From Schizochytrium sp. TIO01 (Eukaryota; Protista; Bigyra: Labyrinthulomycetes), in NCBI GenBank assembly GCA_004764695.1, contig SMSO01000025.1, positions 1,364,001 to 1,428,000 of the forward strand: a DNA stretch of 64,000 nucleotides. Direction: 5' to 3'. The notes under the pieces are model-generated. The model ran no database searches. It was not told the DNA's origin and saw nothing but the letters and a program-made list of their open reading frames with translations. The position numbers were made by a program, and so were the translations under genes. Shown one piece after another: positions 39,933 through 64,000 of this stretch (position 1 is the first letter of the stretch; each line of letters starts with the position of its first letter).

Positions 39933-40672
39933 GCAAGGCACAAGAATACAAACCTACGCTACAGTACCAAATCAACCAATGGAAGTACGTGGCGTACTGT
40001 TGGGAGATATTTGGAGGTAATTTGATCGGAGTTTCCCAAGAATATATACCTTTGGACTAGTTGTGGCGATGAATAATATGGTAGTATGTTTTTCCGAGAT
40101 GGGTAGCAGCCACAAATATCGTTCATAACAGTTTAATTGTATCACTCTACAGAAAACAATTATTGTCAATCAAAATTAGAAGTGCTGCAGCAGACCTGTA
40201 TCAAAGTTCACACCGTCTGTGATTGTTAAAATGAGAAATGGTGTAGTTTCGTTCGTGGAAGAGCAAGACACAAGGATACGAACATACGCAAAAGTACCAA
40301 AGCAACCGATAGGAGTACATAACGTACTGTTTGGAGCCATTTGGAATTAATGTGATCGACCTCTCCCAAGAATATGCACTTTTGGACTAGTAGTGGCGAT
40401 GAATGATATTGTAGTGTGTGTTTCCCGAGATGGGTAGCAGCCACAAGTATCATTTATAATAGTTTAACTGCACCACTCTACTGAGCGCAAGCATTGGCAA
40501 TCAGGCATTAGAAGTACACTGTAGCAGTCCTGTAATAAACTTCACAGCGTCTATGATTGTTAAAATGAGAAATCGTATAATATCATGACTTTAAGAGCAA
40601 GTAATCGAGATACACATCTACTATACTACTAAAGTAAACTATTCAATATGTACTATTGGGAGGTATTTGAAA
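39933..40672. repeat. ~330-bp degenerate tandem repeat (2 full copies + partial third)
   Basis: agtaccaa at 39963 and 40293; shared blocks cccaagaatat, tttggactag, gtggcgatgaat, ccgagatgggtagcagccacaa, gattgttaaaatgagaaat; third copy starts ~40596. Confidence 0.9.
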
Positions 40673-41271
40673 CACTAAAGTGATTTCTAATAATCAATAC
40701 CTACCTACCTCAGAAACTCCAGTAGTTATACATCGTAAAGTAGCATCACTTCCAGAGTAAGGAGCAGATAGATACAGAATATATCATTTAGTTGCCGGTA
40801 ACACACAGTAGACTGCGAATAAGTATATACCAGTAGTAGGGCAAGTTTCATTCGAAAACTTTAGTGATATCAGATTAGAGTGTAGACGTTTCGAACGTAG
40901 AATAGTGTCTGAAAAAAAAGAAAAGAAAAAAAAAAAAGACTCTTCTAACACCATGCCACGGGCAAGTAAAATAAATGAACATGCCCTCTGAGTCAAACTG
41001 TAAATTTGTATCAATGGCTTGATACAATTGGTTAGACCCAAATGAAGTCGGCACCCAAGTGCTCCTTGTCCTCATTCCTGTCACCGATCCCACCTCCTCA
41101 ACAACCCAAGCTGGTACCAGTAGCTTTATAGTACGAGACCGACCAAACTGCAAAGAATAAAAAAGAGAAAAGATATTGAAGATGTATATATCCTCTCTAC
41201 AGCAATGACGTAATATAATATTGTTTGTAATATTGTTTAATTTATTTAAGGGATGTCTAACTATATGCTCT

Positions 41272-44200
41272 TTAACACGTTCCGTCAGCCGAGAATACTA
41301 ACACGGTGTATTTCCAGTCTCCATTACCATTGTAGGCCGTAGATGCATCAACATTTGAGATACGAACCTTAATGCCACCAGTGGTAGCCCAGGAGTTCCA
41401 CAGAATATTTGTAATAATAGCATTTGCATCGGTAGGAGGTGTCACAAACACGAAATCTCCTTCTGATGCATTCGTCACGGTTGCGGTATAAGTAGTTTCA
41501 GCCCCGCTCGCGATAGTCGATGCTGAGGCGTCAATTGTGATTGATCCCCGGATAATCTTCTGAAGTTTCGCACATGAAGACCCGCCAAGTTGAAATCCAT
41601 CTGAAGCGAAACGTGCCACCTCTGATGAACCCGCCTGAAGAATAGTCGAACCAGAGCTGGAACCTCCAGTTCCAGTATTAAGAGTAATATCTCCGCCAGA
41701 AGTCGATGTTCCAATTCCTGATGTAATACTAATACTTCCACCATTTGCAGTTCCAGTACCGCTTGTGATTGAAAAAGCTCCACCGGTAGAAGAAGCACTG
41801 GTTGAGGCACCAGAAGAGATAGTGACAGCACCTCCTGTTGTTCCTGAATTAACTGATAGAGAAATAGCACCAGACGCACCACTGGTCGACGTTCCAGATG
41901 AAATCTCAACAGCACCGGAAGCTCCACTCGCTGTTGTTCCCGACGAAATTTTAACATCACCGCTTGTTCCAGTAGAGACACCGCTACCCGTTGACAGCGT
42001 TACATGTCCTGTCGATGCACTATTGTAGAGGCCAGATGCGAGAGTGAGACCGTTCTGACCATTTGATTCTACGGTGACACCGACTGCGGTGTTAGACGCA
42101 ATCGATGATATCGAAATTGCAGTTCCCGTGAGACCAAGAGAGGTTGTTGATGACGAGTCTCCGATTGTTATAGAAGTTCCATAGAGCAAGGTAGACGAAG
42201 AGCTAATTGTCTGAATTGAATTTCCTGCAGCATTTTTGAAGACAATGCTACCATCTGCTGCGGTTCCAGTTCCTGGCTGAAGAACCACATCACCACCAGT
42301 TGCAGTAGTTCCACTAGCAGCACCACCGACTAGTTTAGCCATGCCACCAGTACCACTGGTGACGGATGATGCGCCAGCTGTCATCGTCAAAGCACCACCA
42401 GTAGCGGCTGAAGACGAGCCAGCGGTTGCCAAGATAGCCCCACCAGCGCCACTGAGGCCAGCGCCAACTGAGAGAGTGATACCACCTCCAGTACCAGATG
42501 TTGCAGCTCCAGTGGTGACAGAAAAGGCTCCTGTATTGCCGCTTGTTGTTGTCCCGGTCGAAAGAGTAATCGCACCACTGGCACCTGATGAACTGGAAGC
42601 CGCGGTAGTGAGAGAGATAGTTCCACTGGCGCCTGAGCTAGCTCCACTAGTAATGGTTACACCGCCACCAGTGCCACCCGAGCCGGCTCCAGCAGTCAAA
42701 GAAATACCGCCTCCGGTTCCGCCAGTCGTGCTTGTGCCAGAGCCTGCAGTAAGAGACACTGAACCACCAGATTGGCTGTCCCCGCTGGTAGTTCCGGCTG
42801 TCACTGTAATACTACCAGAAGTTGTTGTAGAAGATCCGACAAGAAGTGAAATACCACTAGCAGAGCCAGAGCCTGTAGATAACGAGATTGTTCCAGACGC
42901 ACCACTGGTCGACGCTCCAGATGAAATCTCAACAGCACCGGAAGCTCCACTCGCTGTTGCTCCCGACGAAATTTTAACATCACCGCTTGTTCCAGCAGAG
43001 ACACCGCTACCCGTTGATAGCGTTACATCTCCTGTCGATGCAGTATCGTAGAGGCCAGATGCGAGAGTGAGACCGTTCTGACCGTATGATTCTACGGTGA
43101 CACCGCCTGCGGGGTTAGACGCAATCGATGATATCGAAATTGTAGTTCCCGTGAGACCAAGAGAGGTTGTTGATGACGAGTCGCCGATTGTTATAGAAGT
43201 TCCATAGAGCAAGGTTGACGAAGAGCTAATTGTCTGAATTGCAGTTCCTGCAGCATCTTTGAAGACAATGCTACCACCTGCTGCGGTTCCAGTTCCTGGC
43301 TGAAGAACCACATCACCACCAGTTGCAGTAGTTCCACTAGCAGCACCACCGACTAGTTTAGCCATGCCACCAGTACCACTGGTGACGGATGATGCGCCAG
43401 CTGTCATCGTCAAAGCACCACCAGTAGCGGCTGAAGACGAGCCAGCGGTTGCCAAGATAGCCCCACCAGCGCCACTGACGCCAGCGCCAACTGAGAGAGT
43501 GATACCACCTCCAGTACCAGATGTTGCAGCTCCAGTGGTGACAGAAAAGGCTCCTGTATTGCCGTTTGTTGTTGTACCGGTCGAAAGAGTAATCGCACCA
43601 CTGGCACCTGATGAACTGGAAGCCGCGGTAGTGAGAGAGATAGTTCCACTGGTGCCTGAGCCAGCTCCACTGGTAATGGTTACACCGCCACCAGTGCCAC
43701 CCGAGCTGGCTCCAGCAGTCAAAGAAATACCGCCTCCGGTTCCGCCAGTCGTGCTTGTGCCAGAGCCTGCAGTAAGAGACACTGAACCACCAGATTGGCT
43801 GTCCCCGCTGGTAGTTCCGGCTGTCACTGTAACACTACCAGAAGTTGTTGTAGAAGATCCGACAAGAAGTGAAATACCACTGGCAGAGCCAGAAGTGGAT
43901 GAGCCTGTAGATAACGAGATTGCTCCAGACGCACCACTGGTCGACGCTCCAGATGAAATCTCAACAGCACCGGAAGCTCCACTCGCTGTTGCTCCCGACG
44001 AAATTTTAACATCACCGCTTGTTCCAGCAGAGACACCGCTACCCGTTGACAGCGTTACATCTCCTGTCGATGCAGTATCGTAGAGGCCAGATGCGAGAGT
44101 GAGACCGTTCTGACCGTATGATTCTACGGTGACACCGCCTGCGGGGTTAGACGCAATCGATGATATCGAAATTGTAGTTCCCGTGAGACCAAGAGAGGTT

Positions 44201-47200
44201 GTTGATGACGAGTCGCCGATTGTTATAGAAGTTCCATAGAGCAAGGTAGACGAAGAGCTAATTGTCTGAATTGAATTTCCTGCAGCATCTTTGAAGACAA
44301 TGCTACCATCTGCTGCGGTTCCAGTTCCTGGCTGAAGAACCACATCACCACCAGTTGCAGTAGTTCCACTAGCAGCACCACCGACTAGTTTAGCCATGCC
44401 ACCAGTACCACTGGTGACGGATGATGCGCCAGCTGTCATCGTCAAAGCACCACCAGTAGCGGCTGAAGACGAGCCAGCGGTTGCCAAGATAGCCCCACCA
44501 GCGCCACTGAGGCCAGCGCCAACTGAGAGAGTGATACCACCTCCAGTACCAGATGTTGCAGCTCCAGTGGTGACAGAAAAGGCTCCTGTATTGCCGCTTG
44601 TTGTTGTACCGGTCGAAAGAGTAATCGCACCACTGGCACCTGATGAACTGGAAGCCGCGGTAGTGAGAGAGATAGTTCCACTGGCGCCTGAGCTAGCTCC
44701 ACTAGTAATGGTTACACCGCCACCAGTGCCACCCGAGCCGGCTCCAGCAGTCAAAGAAATACCGCCTCCGGTTCCGCCAGTCGTGCTTGTGCCAGAGCCT
44801 GCAGTAAGAGACACTGAACCACCAGATTGGCTGTCCCCGCTGGTAGTTCCGGCTGTCACTGTAATACTACCAGAAGTTGTTGTAGAAGATCCGACAAGAA
44901 GTGAAATACCACTAGCAGAGCCAGAGCCTGTAGATAACGAGATTGTTCCAGACGCACCACTGGTCGACGCTCCAGATGAAATCTCAACAGCACCGGAAGC
45001 TCCACTCGCTGTTGCTCCCGACGAAATTTTAACATCACCGCTTGTTCCAGCAGAGACACCGCTACCCGTTGATAGCGTTACATCTCCTGTCGATGCAGTA
45101 TCGTAGAGGCCAGATGCGAGAGTGAGACCGTTCTGACCGTATGATTCTACGGTGACACCGCCTGCGGGGTTAGACGCAATCGATGATATCGAAATTGTAG
45201 TTCCCGTGAGACCAAGAGAGGTTGTTGATGACGAGTCGCCGATTGTTATAGAAGTTCCATAGAGCAAGGTTGACGAAGAGCTAATTGCCTGAATTGCAGT
45301 TCCTGCAGCATCTTTGAAGACAATGCTACCACCTGCTGCGGTTCCAGTTCCTGGCTGAAGAACCACATCACCACCAGTTGCAGTAGTTCCACTAGCAGCA
45401 CCACCGACTAGTTTAGCCATGCCACCAGTACCACTGGTGACGGATGATGCGCCAGCTGTCATCGTCAAAGCACCACCAGTAGCGGCTGAAGACGAGCCAG
45501 CGGTTGCCAAGATAGCCCCACCAGCGCCACTGAGGCCAGCGCCAACTGAGAGAGTGATACCACCTCCAGTACCAGATGTTGCAGCTCCAGTGGTGACAGA
45601 AAAGGCTCCTGTATTGCCGCTTGTTGTTGTACCGGTCGAAAGAGTAATCGCACCACTGGCACCTGATGAACTGGAAGCCGCGGTAGTGAGAGAGATAGTT
45701 CCACTGGCGCCTGAGCTAGCTCCACTAGTAATGGTTACACCGCCACCAGTGCCACCCGAGCCGGCTCCAGCAGTCAAAGAAATACCGCCTCCGGTTCCGC
45801 CAGTCGTGCTTGTGCCAGAGCCTGCAGTAAGAGACACTGAACCACCAGATTGGCTGTCCCCGCTGGTAGTTCCGGCTGTCACTGTAACACTACCAGAAGT
45901 TGTTGTAGAAGATCCGACAAGAAGTGAAATACCACTGGCAGAGCCAGAAGTGGATGAGCCTGTAGATAACGAGATTGCTCCAGATGCACCGCTTACGGTT
46001 GCGCCTGTGGAAAGCTGAATAGCTCCGCTTATACCAGTGCCAACACCCGCTGGAGAGCTGAGGGTAATCATGCCACTTGAAGTGGCAGATCCAGTTCCTG
46101 AGGTGAGGGTGATGTCGCCTCCAGTTGCAGCACTTGAAGTGCCTGCGCTTAAAGTAATGCTACCGCCTTTACCGGTATTGCCAGATCCAACGCTGAGTTG
46201 GATTGCACCGCCAGCACCTCCAGACGCAGATCCAGATTTAAGCACAATGGCTCCAGAACCTCCACTCGAAGCGATCCCGGTACTTACTGTGATCATTCCA
46301 CTTGAAGTTCCTGAAGCCACTGCCGAACCCACAGTGACAGCGCCTGAAGCACCAGATGAGCTTGTTCCTGAGACAAGAGTTACAGCACCTCCTGTTGCTC
46401 CAGCTCCAGCTCCAGCAGAGAATGACAGTGCACCGCCCTCTCCACTTCCAGCTCCCGCTGTTATCGTCACTGCACCACCAGCTGAATTATCGGCTGTTTT
46501 ACCAGCGGTAATCAAGACATCAGAACCCACGCCGGAGTCTGTATCACCAACAGAGAGTGAGATACTCCCAGCACTGGCACTCTTGGCAGCACCTGATGTA
46601 AGAGTTATTGTACCTGTAGCACCGGACGTGCCTCCAGTCGTTGCCCCGGTGCTCAGGGAGATAGCTCCACTTGCGCCCGTACCAGATACTGCTGCTGTGG
46701 ATAAGGAAATGGCGCCACTTGATGTCGAAGAACTCGCTCCAGAGATGAAGGTGAGAGATCCGCCCGTAGACTGAGATCCAAGACCACCTGTTAGTTTGAC
46801 TTCACCACCTTGACCACCTGTGCCACTTGAACCGGCACCTCCAGTAATCTGAACGGCGCCGCCTGCCACGCTGTTAGCTGTAGTTTCACCTCCAACAATA
46901 GAAACCATTCCACCGGCACCAGTGTTACCAGAGCCGACTTGAATGACAATATTGCCTCCTGCACCGTTCTGAGCAGTGCCAGATGAGACAGTTACAATAC
47001 CACTTGTTCCTGAAGTTGAGGTTCCTGAAGCAACTGTGACTGTTCCAGACAAAGCAGCATCAGACGATTGAAGGGTTGTTGCGCCACTTGTTCCAGTTGA
47101 TGCTAGAGAGCTGGTTCCTGAGTAAAGATTAAGAGCCCCACCAGCTGCCGCACTACTCGAGCCAGCTGTGACTGTTACAGCCCCACCAGCTGCATTGGAT

Positions 47201-50200
47201 GAAGATCCCGCAGTAATAACTACAGCCCCGCCAACTCCAGAATTGCCAGATCCAACAGAGAGGGTAATCGAACCTCCAGCCCCACTAACCCCTGTGCCTG
47301 TAGATATGCTGATAGCTCCAGACGAGCCAGCTGTGGACGAACCTGTGGAGACCGTAATTGTTCCAGTCACACCACTGGATCCTGCGTTTGGAGTAGATAT
47401 TACGATACCACCACTGGAAGTAGCAGTACCCTCACCGCTTCGCAGAGAGAGAGTGCCTCCAGAGGAGGCAGTGCCTGCTCCAGCCTCAATGGTAATTGCA
47501 CCACCAGCTCCTCCAGTCGAAGTTGTTCCGTCTCCACCATAAATGTAAACAGCCCCGCCAGCCTTTGAGTTGGCTGAAGTGTGTCCAGCCTGAAGCAAGA
47601 TATCACCTCCGGCACCGCTTGTACCTGATCCAACACTTAATGTAATTTGACCGCCTTCGCCATTTGCAGTTGTTGCTCCACTTTGCAGTGTTATGTCTCC
47701 AGAGTTTCCACTTGTGGTCGTGCCCGAGGACAGGGTAATGGAGCCAGAAGCACCGCTTGTGCCAGCATTTGCACTCTTTATTGTAATACTACCACTGGAG
47801 GCGGATGTTGACCCCCCAGACTGAATAAGAACATTTCCTCCTGTTAGACCGACTGATGTTCCTGCATAAAGGCTCAGTTGTCCACCTGGACTTCCAGAGC
47901 CGGCCCCAACAGCAATAGTGATAGGTCCTCCAGATCCTCCTGCATTTGCTGTACCCGTAGATATAGTAATAGAGCCAGAGGTGCCAGATGTTGAAGTGCC
48001 AGTCTTAATTGTTAGCGCTCCACTAACGCCTGTTGTCCCAGAATCAGCACTTTTCAGAGTTACATCTCCGCTTGTCGATTCCGTACTTGCACCTGAAGAT
48101 AGAATTAATGCACCGCCAGTCAAAGCTGTTGAGGTGCCACCTGAGACAGTTGCACTACCGCCAATACTATTCGTGCTCGAGGTGCTCGCACCACCAGTCA
48201 CCGAGATAGCACCACCTGTTTTAGACGCTGCACTTGTGGATCCTCCACTTAGTGTAACAGTTTGGCCATCACCTGCTGTACTCACTCCAGGGTTCATTGT
48301 AATTGCACCTGCCTGACCATTTGAGCCTGTGCCAGTTACGAGCTGGATATCGCCGCTTTTTCCCGAAGTTGAGCTACCAGTAGATATAAAGATAGAACCA
48401 CTGACACCAGATGTACCAGCATTCGGTGTTTTAATGTAAATATGTCCACTTGACGAGTCTGCACTACTGCCCGAAGTAAATGTCAGCGAACCACCAGTAA
48501 GGTGTTGAGCTAGTCCTCCAGAAATCAAAACTGCACCTCCAACGCTATTTGTTACGCTAGAGCTTGCACCAGCAGTGAGAGTTAAGGCTCCACCTGTGGA
48601 GGTAGCTCCAGATGCAGACCCGGCAGCAATCGTAATAGCCGCACCTGAAATAGTATTCGCCGAACTAGTCCCAGCAGAAATAACAACACCTCCACTAGTT
48701 GTGCCAGTACTAGTGGACAATGTGATAGAACCTGTAGATCCACTTGCAGAAACGCCGGATGCAATGGTAACACTGCCACTCGATGATGCAGTACCTGCAC
48801 CAGAAGTGATTGAAACTGCTCCGCCGGTATGTGCACCAGCTCCAGCAGTCAGAGTTATTCCACCTCCAGTCGCGGCAGAGGAGTGAGTTGACTGACCAGC
48901 AGTAACTGTTACACTTCCACCTGTCGCAGCAGGTCCACTGCCAACACTCAACGAAATTGATCCACCAGCTCCTGCAGTACCAGCTGTGCCAGTCGACACA
49001 GTGAATCCTCCAGAGTTACCACTTGAAGACGAGCCTGTTGAAATACTCACCGAACCGCTAGCTCCACTGGTACCCGCATTTGGAGTGATCAAAGTGATTG
49101 CGCCAGTTGTAATCCCAGATCCAGAGGTAAACGTCAATGCACCTCCTGTTCCAGATGTTGAGCCACCGCCAATCAGTTGAACAGAGCCACCAACACCCGA
49201 AGATGTTGAGCCACCCGTAAGTTCCACTGAGCCGCCAGTGCCCGTACCACTTGCACCACCGCCATTCAGATTCAATGCAGCCCCGCCAGCATTAGTACCA
49301 GTGCTCGTACTCGGGCCAATCGTGATGGCACCTGAGGTTCCTGAGGTTGTAGTACCACTAGAAATCGTAACAGTTCCAGACGTACCAGTGGTTCCAGTGC
49401 CTGAAGTCAGAGAAAGAGCCCCGCCAGATGTTCCACTGCCAGCATCGATGCTTGCATCGCCTCCAACAGTACTACCTACACCAGCTGCAAGAATGAGGTC
49501 ACCACCAACATCGTTGCTACTGTCACCAGCAGTGACTGTTACTGCACCGCCAGTGCCTGAGGTGCTAGTTCCGGTTGAGATCGTGATCGAACCACCAGCC
49601 GTTGTTGCTGTACCGGTACTCAAGGTCAGCGATCCCGAAGCACCTGCGGTTCCTGAGCCTGATCGGATGGTCACTGCACCAGAAGAAGCAGCGTCACTAC
49701 TTCCAAACATAGCAGTTCCACTTGTAGTTGAACCAGATCCTGAGAACAACGACAAACCACCGCCACTTGCTCCAGACGATACTCCACCGTTGATCGTAAC
49801 AGTTCCTGCCACACCTGATACACTAGTTCCCGCGTAAATGTTGACACTACCCCCTGTTGCGCTAGTTCCAGATGTCTGGCCACCACGAATTGTCACGCTT
49901 CCTGCATTCCCAGCAGTACTCAAACCAGGAATCAACTTAATCTCACCAGTAGAACCTGCAGATGTTCCAGTTGAAATAGTGACAACCCCCGTTGATCCAC
50001 TTGTCGAGGAACCTGAACCCAGATCCACAGTACCAGATACTGCTGATGTTGTTCCAACCCCTGAAGTAATTGAAACTGCTCCGCCGGTATGTGCACCAGC
50101 TCCAGCAGTCAGAGTTATTCCACCTCCAGTCGCGGCAGAGGAGTGAGTTGACTGACCAGCAGTAACTGTTACACTTCCACCTGTCGCAGCAGGTCCACTG

Positions 50201-53200: not shown

Positions 53201-56200
53201 GAGTGGTCATAGAGATAGAACCACTGGTAACACCACTGCCTGAAGTGAAGGTCAATGCACCACCAGTAGTGGTAACGGAAGCTCCCGCAGTAATTGCAAC
53301 AGCACCACCAGTGCCAGATGAGCTAGCACCAGCAATCAATGTGATCGCTCCTCCAACAGCGTTTGCAGCATTGGCAGCACCGGCCAAAATCTCAACACCA
53401 CCACCAGTGCCAGTAGCACTGCCACCTGCAGACAACTTTACAAGACCTCCGCTGCCAGCTGTGGATGCGGTGCTTGTTGATAGAGTCAATGCACCAGTGG
53501 ATCCAGAGGTAGCTGTACCAGTTGAAATAGTCACAGCACCACTTGTGCCTAGAGCAGCAGTACCAGATGCGATCGTTACAGCACCACCGGCAGTTGAGCC
53601 AGCTCCAGAAGTAAGATCGATGTGTCCGCCGATTCCTGTAGATGAGGCTCCTGAAGTCAAGGTGATAGCCCCACCAGTGCCAGATCCAGTGAGTCCACCG
53701 GCAGTCAGGACGATGTTTCCTGCAGTACCAGACGTTGCACCGGTGCTGAGTGTCAATGTTCCACTAGTACCAGTGGTAGTTGCACCTGTTTTGATAGTGA
53801 TCGAGCCACTAGACACTGAATCGGCACTTGAAAATGTCGCATCTCCACTGGTCGACCCTGTGCCAGTTGTAAAGGTAAGTTCACCGCCAATACCTGAAGA
53901 ACTAGAACCAGCAGATAAAATGACAGTTCCACCAACACCATTGGCGCCTTGACTAGCGCCTGCATATAATGACACAGAACCTCCAGTCTTACTTGCAGCT
54001 GTTGTTAGACCAGCAGTCAATGTAATAGTACCACCATCGTTAGTATCACCATCACCAACAGTCATCGAGATGACGCCACCACTACCAGAGGTGGCATCTC
54101 CAGTACTAACAGTAATGGAACCTGTCGATCCTTGTGCTGATGAACCAGTAGACAGCGAGATTCCACCACTAATACCAGAAGCCCCCGAGTTTGGTGTATT
54201 CAATGAAATGATTCCAGTAGTCACCCCAGAACCAGATTTCAAAATTAAAGATCCACCAGTACCAGTACTATCAGGACCGCCATCAATCGTCACATCGCCG
54301 CCAGTACCTCCAGTACTCGAGCCACCTTTCAGTACCAAGGTACCACCTGTATTAGCTCCAGTCGTAGCTCCGGCTTGAACAGTAACATCACTGCCATCCG
54401 TACTGCTATCACCAGCACTGATCGTAACAGTACCTGCAGTAATGCTGGCAAGTCCAGATGAAAGCACAATCGACCCAGAGGTACCGCTCGCACTTCCGGT
54501 TGACAATGTCAGAGGACCACTGAAAGATGTGGTTGCCGCCGATGCAGCACTGCCAATCGTCACGGCTCCAGAGCTAGTACTTGAACCAGAAGTAAAAACA
54601 AGCGCACCACCTGTTCCACCAGTGGCGATACCCGCAGTGAGCGTGATATCGCTTCCTGTGGTCTGGCTGGTCGAACCAACACTGAGTGTGATTGCACCTG
54701 CAGACCCACCAACCGCAGTGCCAGTTGACAACGACACGGCACCGGAAGTACCAGCAGTGGAACTGCCCGTGGACAGACCAATGGCGCCAGTTCCAGTTGA
54801 TCCTGATGAAGTCAAAGTAATTGCTCCACTACTGACCGATCCAGATCCTGACGTCACAGCGATTGCACCACCTGTGCCAGTTGTTGCCGTACCAGAACTG
54901 ATCACTACTTGGCCACCAGTACCGGAGGTACTATCACCAGCGTACATGTTCACAGCACCACCCACCATACCAGAAGCTACAGTTTTGCCTGCGTAAATCG
55001 ACACGGCAGCTCCGTTACCGCCAGAAGAGACACCAACTGACAGCGTCATTGCGCCCGCGGTACCTCCGGAGCCAGCGTTGCTGGTGGAAAGTGTTAAACT
55101 GCCACTGCCAGCAGTACTGGATGCCGCACCACTTGAAATGCTGACAGCACCGCTTAGTCCGGTTCCTCCAGCGCCTGAAGTTATTGTAACTGCGCCACCT
55201 GCAGCAGAGCCTTGGCCTGCTGTAAATGACAAGTCACCGCCGGTCGAAGCTGTAGCCTGACCTGCAGTGATGGTTACATCACCACCCGCAGTACTGCCAC
55301 TGCCGACAGTTAAAGAGATAGCACCTCCAGAACCACCTGTACCTGCGCCACCAGTCTGAATGGTAACACCACCAGTGGTTCCACTGGATGATGTGCCAGT
55401 ACTGATTGTGATACCTCCGCTAACTCCACTCGTACCACTGTTGGGAGTGGTCATGGAGATAGAACCACTGGTAACACCGCTGCCTGACGTGAAAGTCAAT
55501 GCACCGCCAGTAACAGCATTGGACAATCCTGCAGAAATTGCAACAGCACCACCAGTGCCAGATGAGCTAGCGCCAGCCGTCAATGTGATTGCACCTCCAG
55601 CAACGACACTAGCAGCATTGGCAGCACCGGCCAAGATCTGAACACCACCACCAGTGCCAGTAGCACTGCCACCTGCAGACAACTTTACAAGACCTCCGCT
55701 GCCAGCTGTGGATGCGGTGCTTGTTGAAAGAGTCAATGCACCAGTGGATCCAGAGGTAGCTGTACCAGTTGAAATAGTCACAGCACCACTTGTGCCTAGA
55801 GCAGCAGTACCAGATGCGATCGTTACAGCACCACCAGCAGTTGAGCCAGCTCCAGAAGTAAGATCGATGTGTCCGCCGATTCCTGTAGATGAGGCTCCTG
55901 AAGTCAAGGTGATAGCCCCACCAGTGCCAGAGCCAGTGAGTCCACCGGCAGTCAGGACGATGTTTCCTGCAGTACCAGACGTTGCACCGGTGCTGAGTGT
56001 CAATGTTCCACTAGTACCAGTGGTAGTAGTACCTGTCTTCACAGTGATTGAGCCACTGTTCGTTGCATCAGGAGTTGCAATGGTTACTGCACCACTGGAA
56101 GTCCCGCCGCCAGACTGCAGGGTGACTGCACCACCAGTACCAGTACTTGAATCGGCGCCGCCATTAATGGTGACTTGACCGCCAGTACCAGATGCACTTG

Positions 56201-59200
56201 CACCACCCGCTAGTGCGAGCGTTCCACCAACTGCAGATGCGAAAGTGGTCGCACCACCAGTCAAAGTTGCACCAGCACCATTGGCACCGGCGGTTGTGCC
56301 TGCACTAATGGTGATAGCTCCACCTGTGCCACTTGAAGCGCCAGACGCGATTGTAACATCTCCAGAGACCCCACTTGAGGAATCTCCAGTGACAATATCA
56401 ATAAAGCCACTAACAGCGCCACTCTGAGCAGCACCGGCAGCAGTAAGAATAGAAACGGAGCCACTCGATGCGCCAGTTGAAGTGCCAGCGCCTGAAGTCA
56501 TAGAAATGCTTCCGCCTGTGTTAGCACTTGAACTACCTGCGCTAAAAGTGAGGGCGCCACCAGTACCACTGCTGCTGCTACCAACAAAAAGTGAGATGTC
56601 ACCACCCTTGCCAGCCACGGCAGTACCAGTGCTTATTGTAACATCACCTGAGGATCCACCCGTAGCAGATCCAGTAGAAATTGTCAAAGCTCCTGTTGCT
56701 TGGGATGAGCTACTGGATATATCGACAGCGCCACTCGAGGTGCCGGAACCTGAGCTCAAGGTCAAAGCACCGCCAAATGCTGAGGACGAGACGCCTCCGG
56801 CAATGGTGACGCTACCTCCAATTCCGGTGCCACCAGAACCCGCAGTGATACCTACCGAACCACCAACAGTAGAGCCTTGGCCAGCAGTAAATGTCAATGC
56901 ACCGCCTGTCGCAGCTGTAGCTTGACCTGCAGTGATGGTGACACCACCACCCGCAGTACTGCCACTGCCGACAGTTATCGAGATAGCACCTCCAGCACCA
57001 CCAGTACCTGCGCCACCAGTCTGAATTGTAACACCACCAGTGGTACCACTTGATGATGTGCCAGTACTGATTGTGATACCGCCGCTAACTCCACTTGTAC
57101 CACTGTTGGGAGTGGTCATAGAGATGGAACCACTGGTAACACCGCTGCCTGACGTGAAAGTCAATGCACCGCCAGTAATAGCACTGGATAATCCTGCAGA
57201 AATCGCAACAGCACCACCAGTGCCAGATGAGCTAGCGCCAGCAGTCAATGTAATTGCACCTCCAGCAACGACACTAGCAGAGTTGGCAGCACCGGCCAAG
57301 ATCTGAACACCACCACCAGTGCCAGTAGCACTGCCACCTGCAGACAACTTAACAAGACCTCCGCTGCCAGCTGTGGATGCGGTGCTTGTGGATAGAGTCA
57401 ATGCACCAGTTGATCCAGAGGTAGCTGTACCAGTTGAAATAGTCACAGCACCACTTGTGCCTAGAGCAGCAGTACCAGATGCGATCGTTACAGCACCACC
57501 AGCAGTTGAGCCAGCTCCAGAAGTAAGATCGATGTGTCCGCCGATTCCTGTAGATGAGGCTCCTGAAGTCAAGGTGATAGCGCCACCAGTGCCAGAGCCA
57601 GTGAGTCCACCGGCAGTCAGGACAATGTTTCCGGCAGTACTAGACGTCGCACCGGTGCTAAGTGTCAATGTTCCACTAGTACCAGTGGTAGTAGTACCTG
57701 TCTTCACAGTGATTGAGCCACTGTTCGTTGCATCAGGAGTTGCAATGGTTACTGCACCACTGGAAGTTCCGTCACCAGAATTAAAACTCAACGATCCACC
57801 AGTACCAGTACTATCAGCACCGCCATCAATCGTCACATCGCCGCCAGTACCTCCGGTACTCGAGCCACCTTTCAGTACCAAGGTACCACCTGTATTAGCT
57901 CCAGTCGTAGCTCCGGCTTGAACTGTAACATCACTGCCATCCGTACTGCTATCACCAGCACTGATCGTAACAGTACCTGCAGTAGTGCTGGCAAGTCCAG
58001 ATGAAAGCACAATCGACCCAGAGGTACCGCTTGCACTTCCGGTTGACAATGTCAGTGGACCACTGAAAGATGTGGTTGCCGCCGATGCAGCACTGCCAAT
58101 CGTCACGGCTCCAGAGCTAGTACTTGAACCAGAAGTGAAAACAAGCGCACCACCTGTTCCACCAGTGGCGATACCTGCAGTGAGCGTGATATCGCTTCCT
58201 GTAGTCTGGCTGGTCGAACCAACACTGAGTGTGATTGCACCTGCAGACCCACCAACCGCAGTGCCAGTTGACAACGACACGGCACCGGAAGTACCAGCAG
58301 TGGAACTGCCCGTGGACAGACCAATGGCTCCAGTTCCAGTAGATCCTGATGAAGTCAAAGTAATTGCTCCACTACTGAGTGATCCAGATCCTGACGTCAC
58401 AGCGATTGCACCACCTGTGCCAGTTGTTGCCGTACCAGAACTGATCACTACTTGGCCACCAGTACCGGAGGTACTATCACCAGCGTACATGTTCACAGCA
58501 CCACCGACCATACCAGAAGCTTCAGTTTTGCCTGCGTAAATCGACACGGCAGCTCCGTTACCGCCAGAAGAGACACCAACTGACAGCGTCATTGCGCCCG
58601 CGGTGCCTACGGAGCCAGCGTTGCTGGTGGAAAGTGTTAAACTGCCACTACCAGCAGTACCGGCTGCCGCACCACTGGAAATGCTGACAGCACCGCTTAG
58701 TCCGGTTCCTCCAGTGCCTGAAGTTATTGTAACTGCGCCACCCGCTGCAGAGCCTTGGCCTGCTGTAAATGACAAGTCACCACCCGTAGCAGCTGTAGCC
58801 TGACCTGCAGTGATGGTTACATCACCACCTGCAGTACTGCCACTGCCGACAGTTATCGAGATAGCACCTCCAGCACCACCTGTACCTGCGCCACCAGTCT
58901 GAATTGTAACACCACCAGTGGTACCACTTGATGATGTGCCAGTACTGATTGTGATACCGCCGCTAACTCCACTTGTACCACTGTTGGGAGTGGTCATAGA
59001 GATGGAACCACTGGTAACACCGCTGCCTGACGTGAAAGTCAATGCACCGCCAGTAATAGCACTGGATAATCCTGCAGAAATCGCAACAGCACCACCAGTG
59101 CCAGATGAGCTAGCGCCAGCGGTCAATGTGATTGCACCTCCAGCAACGACACTAGCAGAGTTGGCAGCACCGGCCAAGATCTCAACACCACCACCAGTGC

Positions 59201-62200
59201 CAGTAGCACTGCCACCTGCAGACAACTTAACAAGACCTCCGCTGCCAGCTGTGGATGCGGTGCTTGTGGATAGAGTCAATGCACCAGTTGATCCAGAGGT
59301 AGCTGTACCAGTTGAAATAGTCACAGCACCACTTGTGCCTAAAGCAGCAGTTCCAGATGCGATCGTTACAGCACCACCAGCAGTTGAGCCAGCTCCAGAA
59401 GTAAGATCGATGTGTCCGCCGATTCCTGTAGATGAGGCTCCTGAAGTCAAGGTGATAGCCCCACCAGTGCCAGAGCCAGTGAGTCCACCGGCAGTCAGGA
59501 CGATGTTTCCTGCAGTACCAGACGTTGCACCGGTGCTGAGTGTCAATGTTCCACTAGTACCAGTGGTAGTAGTACCTGTCTTCACAGTGATTGAGCCACT
59601 GTTCGTTGCATCAGGAGTTGCAATGGTTACTGCACCACTGGAAGTCCCGCCGCCAGACTGCAGGGTGACTGCACCACCAGTACCAGTACTTGAATCGGCA
59701 CCGCCATTAATGGTGACTTGACCGCCAGTACCAGATGCACTTGCACCACCCGCTAGTGCGAGCGTTCCACCAACTGCAGATGCGAAAGTGGTCGCACCAC
59801 CAGTCAAAGTTGCACCAGCACCATTGGCACCGGCGGTTGTGCCTGCACTAATGGTGATAGCTCCACCTGTGCCACTTGAAGCGCCAGACGCGATTGTAAC
59901 ATCTCCAGAGACCCCACTTGAGGAATCTCCAGTGACGATATCAATAAAGCCACTAACAGCGCCACTCTGAGCAGCACCGGCAGCAGTAAGAATAGAAACA
60001 GAGCCACTCGATGCGCCAGTTGAAGTGCCAGCGCCTGAAGTCATAGAAATGCTTCCGCCTGTGTTAGCACTTGAACTACCTGCGCTAAAAGTGAGGGCGC
60101 CACCAGTACCACTGCTGCTGCTACCAACAAAAAGTGAGATGTCACCACCCTTGCCAGCCACGGCAGTACCAGTGCTTATTGTAACATCACCTGAGGATCC
60201 ACCCGTAGCAGATCCAGTAGAAATTGTCAAAGCTCCTGTTGCTTGGGATGAGCTACTGGATATATCGACAGCGCCACTCGAGGTGCCGGAACCTGAGCTC
60301 AAGGTCAAAGCACCGCCAAATGCTGAGGACGAGACGCCTCCGGCAATGGTGACGCTACCTCCAATTCCGGTGCCACCAGAACCCGCAGTGATACCTACCG
60401 AACCACCAACAGTAGAGCCTTGGCCAGCAGTAAATGTCAATGCACCGCCTGTCGCAGCTGTAGCTTGACCTGCAGTGATGGTGACACCACCACCCGCAGT
60501 ACTGCCACTGCCGACAGTTATCGAGATAGCACCTCCAGCACCACCAGTACCTGCGCCACCAGTCTGAATTGTAACACCACCAGTGGTACCACTTGATGAT
60601 GTGCCAGTACTGATTGTGATACCGCCGCTAACTCCACTTGTACCACTGTTGGGAGTGGTCATAGAGATAGAACCACTTGTAACACCACTGCCTGAAGTGA
60701 AGGTCAATGCACCACCAGTAGTGGTAACGGAAGCTCCCGCAGTAATCGCAACAGCACCACCAGTGCCAGATGAGCTAGCACCAGCAGTCAATGTGATCGC
60801 TCCTCCAACAGCGCTTGCAGCATTGGCAGCACCTGCAGAAACTTGAACCGACCCCCCGACACCGGTCGCACTACCGCCAGCAGACAACACGACATTCCCA
60901 GCTGTTCCTGACGTTGCTTCACCAGTTGAAATAGTTACAGTTCCCGTTCCGGTAGTTCCAGATGTACCGGAAGATACAGTTACACCACCACTCTTCAGGC
61001 TGCCACCTGTGCCTGACGTGATTGTAACTGCACCACCACTTGTTGAGCCCTGGCCAGCAGTAAATGTCAATGCACCGCCCGTCGCAGCTGTAGCTTGACC
61101 TGCAGTGATCGTTACACCACCACCAACAGTACTGCCACTGCCGACACTCATCAAGATAGATCCTCCAGCACCACCTGTACCTGCGCCACCAGTCTGAATC
61201 GTAACACCACCAGTGGTACCACTTGATGATGTGCCTGTACTGATTGTGATACTTCCGCTAACTCCACTTGTACCACTGTTGGGAGTGGTCATGGAGATAG
61301 AACCACTGGTAACACCGCTGCCTGACGTGAAAGTCAATGCACCGCCAGTAACAGCATTGGACAATCCTGCAGAAATCGCAACAGCACCACCAGTGCCAGA
61401 TGAACTAGCGCCAGCGGTCAATGTTATTGCACCTCCAGCAACGACACTGGCTGAGTTGGCAGCACCGGCCAAGATCTCAACACCACCACCAGTGCCAGTA
61501 GCACTGCCACCTGCAGACAACTTAACAAGACCTCCGCTGCCAGCTGTGGATGCGGTGCTTGTGGATAGAGTCAATGCACCAGTTGATCCAGAGGTAGCTG
61601 TACCAGTTGAAATAGTCACAGCACCACTTGTGCCTAGAGCAGCAGTACCAGATGCGATCGTTACAGCACCACCAGCAGTTGAGCCAGCTCCAGAAGTAAG
61701 ATCGATGTGTCCGCCGATTCCTGTAGATGAGGCTCCTGAAGTTAAGGTGATAGCCCCACCAGTGCCAGAGCCAGTGAGTCCACCGGCAGTCAGGACAATG
61801 TTTCCGGCAGTACTAGACGTCGCACCGGTGCTAAGTGTCAATGTTCCACTAGTACCAGTGGTAGTAGTACCTGTCTTCACAGTGATTGAGCCACTGTTCG
61901 TTGCATCAGGAGTTGCAATGGTTACTGCACCACTGGAAGTTCCGTCACCAGAATTAAAACTCAACGATCCACCAGTACCAGTACTATCAGCACCGCCATC
62001 AATCGTCACATCGCCGCCAGTACCTCCGGTACTCGAGCCACCTTTCAGTACCAAGGTACCACCTGTATTAGCTCCAGTCGTAGCTCCGGCTTGAACTGTA
62101 ACATCACTGCCATCCGTACTGCTATCACCAGCACTGATCGTAACAGTACCTGCAGTAGTGCTGGCAAGTCCAGATGAAAGCACAATCGACCCAGATGTAC

Positions 62201-64000
62201 CGCTTGCACTTCCGGTTGACAATGTCAGTGGACCACTGAAAGATGTGGTTGCCGCCGATGCAGCACTGCCAATCGTCACGGCTCCAGAGCTAGTACTTGA
62301 ACCAGAAGTGAAAACAAGCGCACCACCTGTTCCACCAGTGGCGATACCTGCAGTGAGCGTGATATCGCTTCCTGTAGTCTGGCTGGTCGAACCAACACTG
62401 AGTGTGATTGCACCTGCAGACCCACCAACCGCAGTGCCAGTTGACAACGACACGGCACCGGAAGTACCAGCAGTGGAACTGCCCGTGGACAGACCAATGG
62501 CTCCAGTTCCAGTAGATCCTGATGAAGTCAAAGTAATTGCTCCACTACTGAGTGATCCAGATCCTGACGTCACAGCGATTGCACCACCTGTGCCAGTTGT
62601 TGCCGTACCAGAACTGATCACTACTTGGCCACCAGTACCGGAGGTACTATCACCAGCGTACATGTTCACAGCACCACCGACCATACCAGAAGCTTCAGTT
62701 TTGCCTGCGTAAATCGACACGGCAGCTCCGTTACCGCCAGAAGAGACACCAACTGACAGCGTCATTGCGCCCGCGGTGCCTACGGAGCCAGCGTTGCTGG
62801 TGGAAAGTGTTAAACTGCCACTACCAGCAGTACCGGCTGCCGCACCACTGGAAATGCTGACAGCACCGCTTAGTCCGGTTCCTCCAGTGCCTGAAGTTAT
62901 TGTAACTGCGCCACCCGCTGCAGAGCCTTGGCCTGCTGTAAATGACAAGTCACCACCCGTAGCAGCTGTAGCCTGACCTGCAGTGATGGTTACATCACCA
63001 CCTGCAGTACTGCCACTGCCGACAGTTATCGAGATAGCACCTCCAGAACCACCTGTACCTGCGCCACCAGTCTGAATTGTAACACCACCAGTGGTACCAC
63101 TTGATGATGTGCCAGTACTGATTGTGATACCGCCGCTAACTCCACTTGTACCACTGTTGGGAGTGGTCATAGAGATGGAACCACTGGTAACACCGCTGCC
63201 TGACGTGAAAGTCAATGCACCGCCAGTAATAGCACTGGATAATCCTGCAGAAATCGCAACAGCACCACCAGTGCCAGATGAGCTAGCGCCAGCGGTCAAT
63301 GTGATTGCACCTCCAGCAACGACACTAGCAGAGTTGGCAGCACCGGCCAAGATCTGAACACCACCACCAGTGCCAGTAGCACTGCCACCTGCAGACAACT
63401 TTACAAGACCTCCGCTGCCAGCTGTGGATGCGGTGCTTGTTGAAAGAGTCAATGCACCAGTGGATCCAGAGGTAGCTGTACCAGTTGAAATAGTCACAGC
63501 ACCACTTGTGCCTAGAGCAGCAGTACCAGATGCGATCGTTACAGCACCACCAGCAGTTGAGCCAGCTCCAGAAGTAAGATCGATGTGTCCGCCGATTCCT
63601 GTAGATGAGGCTCCTGAAGTCAAGGTGATAGCCCCACCAGTGCCAGAGCCAGTGAGTCCACCGGCAGTCAGGACGATGTTACCTGCAGTACCAGACGTTG
63701 CACCGGTGCTGAGTGTCAATGTTCCACTAGTACCAGTGGTAGTTGCACCTGTTTTGATAGTGATCGAGCCACTAGACACTGAATCGGCACTTGAAAATGT
63801 CGCATCTCCACTGGTAGAACCTGTGCCAGTTGTAAAGGTAAGTTCACCGCCAATACCTGAAGAACTGGAACCAGCAGATAAAATGACAGTTCCACCAACA
63901 CCATTGGCGCCTTGACTAGCGCCTGCATATAATGACACAGAACCTCCAGTCTTGCTTGCATCTGTTGTTAGACCAGCAGTCAATGTAATAGTACCACCAT
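41272..64000 (-). CDS. Giant Gly/Ser/Thr/Ala beta-repeat fibre-like protein (>=~7,575 aa, 5' end beyond window; single 1-bp frameshift at 51246-51249)
   Basis: The 4263-aa and 3307-aa ORFs share the same repeat (GG-x-[VI]-[TS]-[ILV]-[TS]-[AST]-G, ~13-16 aa). Restoring one C at 51246 (C4 here vs C5 in the twin copy at 49986-49990) fuses them. The frame is open to the window end. Non-repetitive C-terminal domain at 41272-41622. Confidence 0.88.
41860..45990 (-). repeat. Four tandem ~1023/1032-bp (341/344-aa) modules in the C-terminal part of the giant gene
   Basis: Equivalent positions 42341, 43364, 44396 and 45419 (spacings 1023, 1032, 1023); alternate copies share a 9-bp indel. Confidence 0.93.
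48809..51337 (-). repeat. Near-perfect 1260-bp (420-aa) tandem duplication within the giant gene
   Basis: 48986/50246, 49238/50498 and 49838/51098 are identical blocks offset by 1260 bp. Confidence 0.95.
51340..64000 (-). repeat. Mosaic of shuffled 0.5-4 kb internal repeat modules in the giant gene
   Basis: Recurrent blocks at 52198/54442/57985/62158; 51532/55654/57319/63370; 56245/59788; 53753/63716. Copies differ mostly at synonymous sites. Confidence 0.92.

Follow-up and report, generated by a model that had tools for sequence, protein, structure and literature searches.

The window, by which we mean the whole stretch of 64,000 nucleotides of Schizochytrium sp. TIO01 DNA that was analysed, covers no more than the final fifth of one giant gene of about 105,000 bases. 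Taken in full, our observations are best explained, and in our judgment probably explained correctly, by one native, intron-free stramenopile gene of about 105 kb whose product, a precursor of about 35,060 amino acids, is predicted to be secreted and would form a trimeric fibre and cleave itself.

RESULTS

One reading frame of about 105 kb

The minus-strand frame that ends at position 41272 runs 82 kb beyond the window to an ATG at C24:1,510,460 (window-equivalent coordinate 146,460), giving a gene of ~105,186 nt and 35,060 codons with an intron count of 0 and a predicted precursor of ~35,060 amino acids and ~3.26 MDa. Within the window, two minus-strand open frames (41275 to 51195 and 51192 to 63983, open at the window edge) amount to ~7,590 codons, and the original prediction of more than 22.7 kb of continuous coding sequence was borne out apart from one probable homopolymer break, while its size of more than 7,500 amino acids proved an underestimate of about fivefold. 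The gene had also been called intronless, in agreement with read-set contigs of 17 to 35 kb that cover it and are free of joints. In the unique 5' third (33 kb), a first open stretch of 4,478 codons is followed by a second of 6,683, which forms the unique portion of one unbroken stretch of 10,882 codons. From N to C terminus, the product consists of a signal peptide, PSI Cys-rich domains, ~6,100 amino acids of repeat units, two Peptidase_S74 domains, ~28,000 amino acids of repeat units, and a 115-amino-acid head. The features are as follows, with window-equivalent coordinates for those outside the window.

41272 to 41274, minus strand: stop codon of the giant gene
41275 to 41640, minus strand: C-terminal head domain, all-beta, ~115 amino acids, starting near ARFASDG at 41616
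41641 to 51245, minus strand: 15-residue repeat units in 1023/1032-nt and 1260-nt higher-order repeats
42004 to 42246, minus strand: transition module, copy 4 of 4, non-repeat, 82 amino acids (IVFKNAAG...VTLSTG)
43027 to 43269, minus strand: transition module, copy 3
44059 to 44301, minus strand: transition module, copy 2
45082 to 45324, minus strand: transition module, copy 1
51246 to 51249, minus strand: G4 run with apparent frameshift, G5 in an otherwise identical paralogue
51250 to 64000, minus strand: repeat units continuing in the same frame, ~9.96-kb super-repeat
Near 92,070 (window-equivalent): further frame break
Starts at 127,337 and 125,549 (window-equivalent), minus strand: two S74 domains, outside the window
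Near 146,100 (window-equivalent), minus strand: PSI domains, outside the window

Frame breaks and selection

The assembly of the giant gene carries about 15 frame breaks, and 72 kb of it are near-identical repeats whose copy number rests on one assembly, features that would be expected of a decaying pseudogene or of a repeat array swollen by misassembly. We consider such an explanation very unlikely, since 4/4 independent runs remove the sole testable break, at window-equivalent 133,030, by a 1-base deletion and so mark it as an assembly error, each further isolated break that was examined differs from its paralogue by a single base, and the clustered ones lie in an indel-dense patch. In the window, the two open frames are split only because the run at 51246 to 51249 lacks a G that would make it G5. 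The 101 nt around it show 100% identity, apart from this base, with a paralogous copy 1,260 nt downstream, and the assembly probably has a homopolymer error here. At about 100,450, the paralogue has CC and one C is absent here, and the cluster at 72.7 to 75.4 kb contains 42 single-base indels in 2.9 kb relative to its paralogue, as in an unpolished patch. The frame breaks thus look like assembly errors, with the read check resting on one break.

The long open stretches of the unique 5' third likewise argue against decay, as does the finding that every repeat period outside the indel-dense patch is a multiple of 3. Moreover, strain single-nucleotide polymorphisms in the gene comprise 27 synonymous and 9 nonsynonymous changes against a chance expectation of 27% synonymous (pN/pS, ~0.12), and the gene is under purifying selection. 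It was found in runs from ten studies, under ten organism labels. The assembly sizes of runs X1, X17, and X19 (18 to 39 Mb compared with a 64-Mb genome, at depths of 12 to 138) suggest that these runs may be transcriptomes.

A strict 15-residue repeat

The autocorrelation of hydrophobic residues peaks at 15 residues in all parts of the protein, which corresponds to ~500 units within the window, the number of short strand units originally proposed, and ~2,250 in the entire protein. Each unit consists of a GGxFxFxxG strand (F being a hydrophobic residue) followed by a Gly/Ser/Thr loop, with hydrophobic residues alternating i/i+2 within the strict period, merely 2 to 3 large hydrophobic residues per unit, and Gly columns at 7/8 spacing that are kept across 54 diverged repeat copies. 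The composition is 24% Gly, 17.5% Ser, 15% Thr, 11% Ala, 18% Val plus Ile plus Leu, 0.06% Cys, and 0.7% Pro. The units matched no Pfam or PHROG family, the repeat matches among those listed in a genome search all lie inside the giant gene, and no paralogues of the terminal domains were found in the genome. Transition-like modules also sit ahead of the head in the homologues P0036, P0045, P0048, and P0049.

With Gly, Ser, and Thr making up 58% of residues and no Pfam match for the repeats, one might think of a disordered, mucin-like coat protein, heavily O-glycosylated and without a regular fold. Mucin-like sequences would be Pro/Thr/Ser rich, aperiodic, and disordered, whereas the low Pro content, the strict hydrophobic period with its i/i+2 alternation, the conserved Gly columns, the confident structure predictions, and the S74 chaperones within the gene make this interpretation extremely unlikely. 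Disordered repeats had been named beforehand as an outcome that would speak against a fibre; what we found is a periodic sequence with a confidently predicted fold.

Predicted trimeric shaft

Structure prediction of the repeats as a homotrimer gave ipSAE values of 0.92/0.94/0.92 compared with 0.00 for the best control (ipSAE being the model's own confidence, with a calibration that was made on dimers), and pLDDT values of 90 to 92. The predicted trimer has ~2,500 contacts with a main offset of i to i+15, that is, a stagger of one unit between chains, and its interface is made of the GGxFxFxxG segments. The AF2 monomer of the repeats, in contrast, reached a pLDDT of 76 and contained no strands by DSSP, so the comparison of monomer with trimer that had been proposed with the original prediction came out on the side of the trimer. 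The proposed Foldseek search of the repeat model against the PDB matched nothing, and the only fold matches of the monomer model were weak ones to single HylP chains (6wv2, Z 3.9; 2c3f, Z 3.6). The repeats have no sequence relatives in the PDB and hence nothing for the prediction to have memorised. A relative, P0019, matches DUF2345 of VgrG weakly. The trimer model fits a parallel, intertwined homotrimer with a triple-stranded beta-helix.

A fibre built from a monomeric beta-solenoid, as in bacterial giant adhesins, ice-binding proteins, or filamentous haemagglutinin, would be compatible with short Gly-flanked strands carrying Thr/Ser ladders, and some insect antifreeze solenoids share the 15-residue period. 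We nevertheless regard it as improbable, given that the monomer model has no intrachain strands and matches no solenoid, that prediction confidence is much higher for the trimer than for the monomer, that the same gene has S74 trimerisation chaperones embedded in it, and that each unit has so few large hydrophobic residues. Of the two architectures in the original prediction, the modelling thus favours the triple beta-helix over the single-chain solenoid.

The shaft of adenovirus and reovirus fibres, a trimeric triple beta-spiral, has a 15-residue pseudo-repeat with conserved Gly turns, and the giant protein resembles it in repeat length, in Gly turns, and in its predicted trimeric state. The two differ in other respects: no fold match to it appeared among 48,161 PDB representatives, the second half-unit lacks a second hydrophobic strand, and the intrachain hairpins that it implies were absent by DSSP from the monomer.

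Our results lead us to propose that three chains would wind into a triple-stranded beta-helix in which each 15-residue unit contributes one interchain strand of ~10 residues (GGxFxFxxG) and one surface loop. With a rise of ~0.48 nm per unit, a value drawn from geometry that another intertwined fold would alter, ~2,250 units would give a total length of ~1.05 micrometres, in place of the few hundred nanometres estimated originally.

The N terminus and two internal S74 domains

The recovered 5' end encodes a hydrophobic signal sequence, which had been singled out as a point to check, followed by Cys-rich domains of the PSI (plexin-semaphorin-integrin) type (PF01437; 27.8 and 24.5 bits compared with a gathering cutoff of 23.1, with the Cys pattern), a second Cys-rich copy being visible by eye. 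The giant product is, from its sequence, predicted to be secreted. Two stretches match Peptidase_S74 (PF13884), the intramolecular chaperone auto-processing (ICA) domain of phage tailspikes and MYRF, with 89.7 bits and an E value of 1.4e-25 in Pfam (cutoff, 22) and with 59.2 and 43.3 bits in a genome profile scan. They also match the MYRF ICA structure 7dc3 (E value, 1.9e-10), which is the best PDB sequence match. The domains lie at residues ~6,375 and ~6,971 and carry the motifs SDRRIK and SDQRIK. In endosialidase NF, the Lys of the catalytic dyad follows the Ser by five residues at the start of the domain, and the motifs of the giant gene have the same spacing at the same place; the homologues P0021, P0100, and P0101 have SDRRIK, SDQRIK, and SDKRIK. 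By analogy with phage endosialidases and MYRF, the S74 domains may nucleate trimerisation of the upstream fibre and then cut themselves at the first Ser, which would leave two fibres, one of ~190 nm with the PSI domains and one of ~0.87 micrometre, and a short piece from between them.

The C-terminal head

As originally described, the protein ends in a globular domain without a hydrophobic tail of the transmembrane or GPI type. The AF2 model of this head (pLDDT, 88; pTM, 0.77) is all-beta, of the beta-sandwich type. Its fold matches are to distal domains of phage tailspikes and pyocin fibres and to H-type lectins, at middling Z scores of 5.2 to 6.9 (all below 8): Discoidin I H-lectin (6.9), phi297 gp61 (6.5), Kp32gp38 (6.3), LKA1 gp49 (6.1), the R2 pyocin fibre (5.7), and HPA (5.5). 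Searches of BFVD returned tail-fibre C termini with a probability of 1.0 and a TM score of ~0.6. The modelled head thus resembles these distal domains and, together with the two internal S74 domains, the confident trimer prediction, and the signal peptide and PSI domains at the 5' end, supports the extracellular, tail-fibre-like architecture first suggested.

By sequence, the head has only 41 relatives among 1.84 billion representatives, almost all of them C-terminal. It matches no Pfam profile, including H_lectin (PF09458), and no PHROG profile, and BLASTP found no similarity to the C-terminal domain of P0016 (Chloropicon cluster). PHROG 17585 is connected to the head only indirectly, via P0060, in which the head is fused to a tailspike-like protein with a PHROG match. 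A lectin-like head at the distal end of a long fibre would bind a ligand, probably carbohydrate.

Homologues and genomic setting

The same architecture is present in the homologues P0014, P0100, P0101, and P0021 and in P0104 of the oomycete Aphanomyces. An N-terminal homologue is found in Aphanomyces, with more relatives in marine metagenomes. The only named N-terminal relative that we found, H310_14209 of Aphanomyces invadans, is a chimeric gene model, which is why such genes are largely invisible in protein databases. Aurantiochytrium literature searches and one proteome paper on thraustochytrid zoospores and vegetative cells yielded no mention of such a gene.

Instead of being a host structural gene, the locus might be a fibre gene, endogenised or still tied to a virus, that came from a polinton-like virus, a giant virus, or a phage. 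Polinton-like viruses of protists commonly have S74-terminated fibres of up to 3.9k amino acids (PMC12220804), the nearest neighbours of the head are proteins of tailed phages, and P0060 provides the link to a PHROG-matching, tailspike-like protein. We think this unlikely, however, as the flanks (25 to 40 kb on each side) contain ordinary cellular genes and no viral hallmarks, and the codon usage of the gene is that of its neighbours. The signal peptide and PSI domains, the N-terminal homologue in an oomycete genome, the purifying selection, and the presence of the gene in runs from so many studies and organism labels also speak for a cellular gene, whose fibre modules possibly have an ancient viral origin.

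DISCUSSION

Among the closest counterparts of the giant protein are phage tailspikes and fibres (the K1F/NF endosialidase and the L-shaped T5 fibre pb1), in which, as here, the S74 Ser...Lys motif directly follows a Gly-rich beta-helical shaft. Their intertwined trimeric shaft is predicted here as well, and our modelled distal beta-sandwich resembles their C termini at middling Z scores. Unlike the genes of these phage proteins, the giant gene is a cellular eukaryotic one; its product, which carries a signal peptide as well as PSI domains, is 25 to 30 times longer, two S74 domains lie inside it and are flanked on either side by fibre, its C-terminal end is the head and not a chaperone, and its 15-residue unit fits no Pfam or PHROG family. 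A one-unit offset between face-neighbouring strands from different chains, as predicted here, is seen in the triple beta-helices of HylP1-3 and T4 gp5/VgrG, although the HylP match is weak and without sequence similarity, and the giant protein has units of 15 rather than ~8 to 10 residues and thousands rather than tens of layers.

Among the S74 proteins of cellular eukaryotes, MYRF is to our knowledge the only one that has been studied well. It has a beta-helical stalk, and its S74 domain, which is internal as in the giant protein, forms trimers and cleaves itself (PMC8326128, PMC3742443). MYRF is, however, a transcription factor of the endoplasmic reticulum membrane that has an Ndt80 DNA-binding domain and whose stalk is very short, whereas the S74 domains here are followed just by fibre repeats and the head, with no DNA-binding or transmembrane domain. 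The fibres of polinton-like and giant viruses of protists are large and modular and combine S74 domains, repeat shafts, and lectin-like binding domains (PMC12220804), but they reach at most ~3.9k amino acids, have a C-terminal S74 domain, and use laminin-G, collagen, and PTR modules, while the giant gene has a cellular setting and native codons.

In size, the precursor belongs with titin, PKZILLA-1 (45,212 amino acids and 4.7 MDa, ~25% larger than titin), and PKZILLA-2 (3.2 MDa) (10.1101/2024.01.29.577497). It differs from them in having one uninterrupted frame and one simple repeat and in being predicted to be secreted and self-cleaved, and it does not work as an enzyme assembly line, as the PKZILLA proteins do, or as a sarcomeric spring, as titin does. 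If the assembly is right, it would be one of the three or four largest predicted proteins of any organism, comparable to titin and PKZILLA-2, and would be encoded without introns.

Our findings suggest that the product may serve as an extracellular adhesive or tethering filament or as a surface hair; the candidate roles in the original prediction were adhesion, hairs, and ectoplasmic-net structure. A bolder reading, which we put forward as speculation and consider doubtful, is that this is the longest uninterrupted protein-coding frame yet described, encoding a self-processing polyprotein that yields triple-beta-helix filaments of micrometre length, a phage invention co-opted by stramenopile cells. 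Hairs of zoospores, cysts, or the cell surface, for example, could owe their shafts or thin terminal filaments to it, and in oomycetes and other marine protists the same gene would be masked by broken gene models.

The giant gene would show that the phage design, in which a self-cleaving S74 chaperone folds a Gly-rich triple beta-helix, is at work in free-living eukaryotic cells and is not confined to MYRF and to the viruses of such cells. Enlarged about 30-fold, the design would here give filaments that can be seen by light microscopy. The regular 15-residue unit offers a possible scaffold for rigid nanofibres, and the protein is a candidate molecule for surface fibres of labyrinthulomycetes and oomycetes that still await characterisation.

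Extent, layout and surroundings of the giant gene

As had been proposed for this part of the DNA, coding sequence fills the last 22.7 kb of the window; it lies on the minus strand, in two very long open reading frames (ORFs; 41272-51195 and 51192-63983) that are split by a single-base shift only, and no stop closes the upstream ORF before the window ends. The window is positions 1,364,001-1,428,000 of contig C24 (SMSO01000025.1) in a 64-Mb, 37-contig eukaryotic assembly, and a further 109 kb beyond it were examined for continuation of the frame. With a few frame changes, the frame runs to an ATG at window-equivalent 146,460 (window numbering carried on past position 64,000), giving a span of 105,186 nt, or ~35,060 codons, and a product of ~3.26 MDa (computed at 93 Da per residue), so that the gene is about five times larger than the more than 7,500 residues of the original prediction. 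The repeat periods are all multiples of three, except inside one defective patch; a main caveat is that repeat copy number depends on one assembly.

Features of the giant gene and its flanks (window-equivalent positions)
146,460-113,000, minus: zone 1, the 5' third, with no repeated 24-mer
127,337, minus: Peptidase_S74 domain 1, at residue ~6,375
125,549, minus: Peptidase_S74 domain 2, at residue ~6,971
113,000-83,000, minus: zone 2, 651/657-nt tandem units of 217-219 aa, each 14 short units
83,000-50,000, minus: zone 3, a complex super-repeat of ~9.96 kb
50,000-41,275, minus: zone 4, 1260-nt and 1023/1032-nt repeats and the C-terminal globular domain (head)
Flank, one side: DENN, eIF3L, CCDC180-like ciliary protein, ROK kinase, VAP/MSP
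Flank, other side: presenilin, OSCA/RSN1 channel

The repeats of zone 1 have diverged at the protein level. The flanking genes are ordinary cellular genes, the codon usage of the giant gene is that of its neighbors, and its raised G+C stems from second codon positions (GC3, 0.32 to 0.36). No other copy was found in the genome, where both terminal domains are without a paralogue, and no repeat match fell outside the gene among the matches listed (59 weaker ones were not listed).

Within the window, positions 11101-16770 (minus) hold a 1,889-aa intron-free ORF with DUF4455 and DUF4456 (CCDC180-like), which we take to be a ciliary protein family; if so, a flagellate stage would be expected in the organism. 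Three abutting ORFs of 990, 273, and 525 aa without a Pfam family (25694-31040, plus) may be one larger gene divided by frame errors or short introns. The ~9 kb beyond the giant gene stop (32100-41270) have a low G+C (0.38 to 0.41) and no ORF of at least 120 aa.

Frame breaks, selection and expression

Isolated frame breaks lie near window-equivalent 133,030, 100,450, 92,070, and 51,24x. Some ten more are clustered between 75,400 and 72,740. The break at 133,030 is in unique sequence, and one base is absent exactly there in all four runs, from four studies, which restores the frame; the 6-kb stretch around it is fully covered in each run by 5- to 35-kb contigs with no joint, so there is no intron there. 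At 51246-51249, the assembly has G4 where a paralogous copy 1,260 nt downstream, otherwise 100% identical across 101 nt, has G5, and at 100,450 one C of a CC pair is missing relative to the paralogue; near 92,070, the alignment is locally noisy. The clustered breaks fall in a patch inside the repeat array (72,740-75,400; C24:1,436,740-1,439,400), and this 2.9-kb patch differs from the paralogue 9.96 kb away by 42 single-base indels and 38 mismatches, which looks like an unpolished long-read stretch of the assembly. In the 651-nt tandem zone, one copy at ~108,400 reads RIRLDYRRWHTASSSG and all others RIRLTTGAGTASSSG; the variant is probably a compensated pair of close indels, that is, assembly noise.

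Strain-distinguishing substitutions in the 6-kb stretch number 36, of which 27 are synonymous and 9 non-synonymous, against a chance expectation of 27% synonymous, and the resulting pN/pS of ~0.12 shows the frame to be under purifying selection. Over C24:1,494,031-1,500,030 (L018), position 3000 and 35 other sites differ among runs; runs under several organism labels diverge from the assembly by only 0.03 to 0.4%, and the read run X1, near-identical to it, may stem from the source strain.

Expression of the giant gene is a prediction. Three runs covering it have small assemblies (18 to 39 Mb) at depths of 12 to 138, which would fit transcriptomes, although their identity as RNA is a guess. Among homologues of the head, P0026 carries the source label 'merc' and run accession ERR1712003, presumably from a marine metatranscriptome catalogue.

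A putative secreted protein with a regular repeat shaft

Recovery of the 5' end, proposed earlier as a check for a signal peptide or anchor, led to the ATG at C24:1,510,460. The protein begins MSRIHK; next come a 16-residue hydrophobic segment, FLGMFALLALMNIAAV, which is either a cleaved signal or an anchor, and two Cys-rich modules, the second of which is a PSI domain by Pfam (27.8 and 24.5 bits; cut-off, 23.1). Since PSI domains lie outside the cell and are held by disulphide bonds, the giant protein would enter the secretory pathway and is probably secreted.

Translation of the window gives 24% Gly, 17.5% Ser, 15% Thr, 11% Ala, and 18% Val, Ile, and Leu together, with 0.06% Cys and 0.7% Pro. 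In every part of the protein, hydrophobic residues recur with a 15-residue period and i/i+2 alternation; ORF pieces between frame breaks were searched separately, and none extended across a stop. In consensus, each unit reads G-G-x-[IVL]-x-[IVLF]-x-x-G and then has 5 to 8 Gly/Ser/Thr-rich residues, and an alignment of 54 diverged copies shows Gly columns conserved at 7- and 8-residue spacing. Composition and period thus bear out the repeats of hydrophobic/Thr-Ser strands and Gly/Ser/Thr turns in the original prediction, and ~2,250 units make up the whole protein.

Predicted trimeric structure of the shaft

A monomer model of a 440-aa stretch, built from an alignment of the diverged repeats within the gene itself, reached pLDDT 76 and pTM 0.61, and DSSP assigned it no intrachain secondary structure. 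Foldseek returned no match for it, and an exhaustive structural comparison gave only five chains with a Z of at least 2, of which three are single chains from the triple-stranded beta-helix of streptococcal phage hyaluronidases (6wv2, Z 3.9; 2c3f, Z 3.6; 2wb3, Z 2.5) and another belongs to a phage tailspike. Weak as they are, the matches all but point one way. When three copies of 300 shaft residues were predicted together, ipSAE was 0.92, 0.94, and 0.92 in three runs (best of three controls, 0.00), reaching a mark that 21 of 30 solved homodimers and none of 23 solved single chains attained, a calibration outside which a trimer falls. The trimer models have pLDDT 90 to 92, at least 79% contact agreement between runs, and ~2,500 interchain contacts. 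The repeat has no similar sequence in the PDB (best E, 0.29), so a memorized complex does not explain the prediction.

In the contacts of highest confidence, residue i meets i+15 (range, 14 to 17) of the next chain, that is, one unit on, and the contact segments are exactly the GGxFxFxxG strands (F, hydrophobic residue), with the Gly/Ser/Thr loops excluded. A triple-stranded beta-helix calls for just this modeled register. The shaft is therefore predicted to be an intertwined trimer, in line with the earlier trimeric beta-helical reading, in which strands on each face would alternate between chains A, B, and C and every unit would add one 0.48-nm layer. At ~2,250 units, the shafts would total ~1.05 micrometers, longer than the few hundred nanometers first suggested.

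The head and the internal S74 domains

The last ~115 residues form a distinct C-terminal domain without a hydrophobic tail, as anticipated. Its AF2 model is all-beta (pLDDT 88, pTM 0.77). Foldseek against the PDB gave weak matches to phage tailspike C-terminal domains (LKA1 gp49, phi297 gp61, and Pam1) and H-type lectins, and an exhaustive aligner matched it to the discoidin I H-lectin domain (Z 6.9), phi297 gp61 (Z 6.5), Kp32gp38 (Z 6.3), LKA1 gp49 (Z 6.1), R-type pyocin fibers (Z 5.6 to 5.7), and Helix pomatia agglutinin (Z 5.5). A viral structure library yielded ~50 tailed-phage fiber or tailspike C termini (probability, ~1.0; TM, ~0.6), and in a language-model atlas the head adjoins tailed-phage clusters, K1-lyase_C, Gp53-like_C, and H_lectin. 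Since these scores are all middling, they show that the modeled head is similar to distal domains of phage fibers, with membership unproven. In phage fibers, the N terminus is proximal and the binding C terminus distal.

A scan for islands of deviating composition identified two internal Peptidase_S74 domains (Pfam, 89.7 bits, E 1.4e-25), with no further copy in the gene; among PDB sequences, they match the MYRF ICA domain best (7dc3, E 1.9e-10). Both start S-D-x-R-I-K, with Ser and, five residues on, Lys, which we take to be the catalytic dyad of the self-cleaving chaperone. A non-repeat transition module of ~85 aa precedes each, and four similar 82-aa modules lie within the window (42004-45324). 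Three further S74 loci occur in the genome, on C6, at C34:4,630,228, and at C36:3,326,875. The C6 locus (C6:1,308,509-1,311,679) encodes a separate phage-like fiber protein: its ORF spans at least 594 aa and combines Asn-rich repeats of beta-helix-like character with a coiled coil and an S74 domain at the C terminus.

Relatives

The homologue search proposed earlier found relatives in an oomycete, in Chloropicon, and in marine metagenomes, which indicates that the family is spread among marine protists. The JGI metagenome protein P0014 has the same N-terminal signal, PSI domain, and repeats, and Aphanomyces invadans H310_14209 (P0104) is 42% identical to the giant protein's N terminus. The P0104 gene model is chimeric, its PSI-plus-repeat N terminus being fused to PTHB1/BBS9 domains, as is that of P0006 (repeats and an IFT140/172 TPR piece), so automatic annotation evidently breaks such genes. 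P0100 (Tara Oceans), P0101, and P0021 carry repeats on both sides of an S74 domain, and a cluster of shorter relatives contains a Chloropicon roscoffensis protein. The head is rare (41 relatives among 1.84 billion representatives), almost always at the extreme C terminus and mostly after the same 15-residue repeats; its relative P0060 follows a beta-helix protein of tailspike type that has a match to a phage PHROG at its end. Judged from these sequences, the family is probably old within stramenopiles.

Proposed working and meaning

Our results lead us to predict trimerization, cleavage, and a role for the protein by analogy with phage endosialidases, T5 pb1, and MYRF, the models for the S74 mechanism (PMC8326128, PMC3742443, PMC4690869). 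The precursor would enter the endoplasmic reticulum, where each S74 domain would trimerize, template folding of the upstream beta-helix, and then cut the chain at its own first Ser, while the C-terminal 28,000 residues would be nucleated by the trimeric head or the transition modules. Three products would result: a PSI-bearing fiber of ~190 nm; a short middle piece with S74, ~26 units, and a transition module; and a ~0.87-micrometer fiber with S74 domain 2 at its start and the lectin-like head at its end. By analogy with phage fibers and H-type lectins, we propose that the protein forms an adhesive or tethering filament outside the cell, with a carbohydrate-binding tip; surface or zoospore hairs, cyst attachment fibers, and net-associated filaments are speculative candidates.

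PKZILLA-1 (45,212 aa, 4.7 MDa) is ~25% above titin, and PKZILLA-2 has 3.2 MDa (10.1101/2024.01.29.577497); the giant protein is in the same size class, here in one exon. Polinton-like and giant viruses of protists have fibers on the same building principle (PMC12220804), which they share with phages and MYRF and which joins a triple beta-helix rich in Gly to an S74 chaperone and a beta-sandwich at the distal end. What would be new is a secreted structural gene of this principle that is cellular and eukaryotic, with S74 used internally between fiber segments, i.e., as a polyprotein, a PSI N terminus, a regular 15-residue unit with no family match, and a size of the titin and PKZILLA class within one exon.
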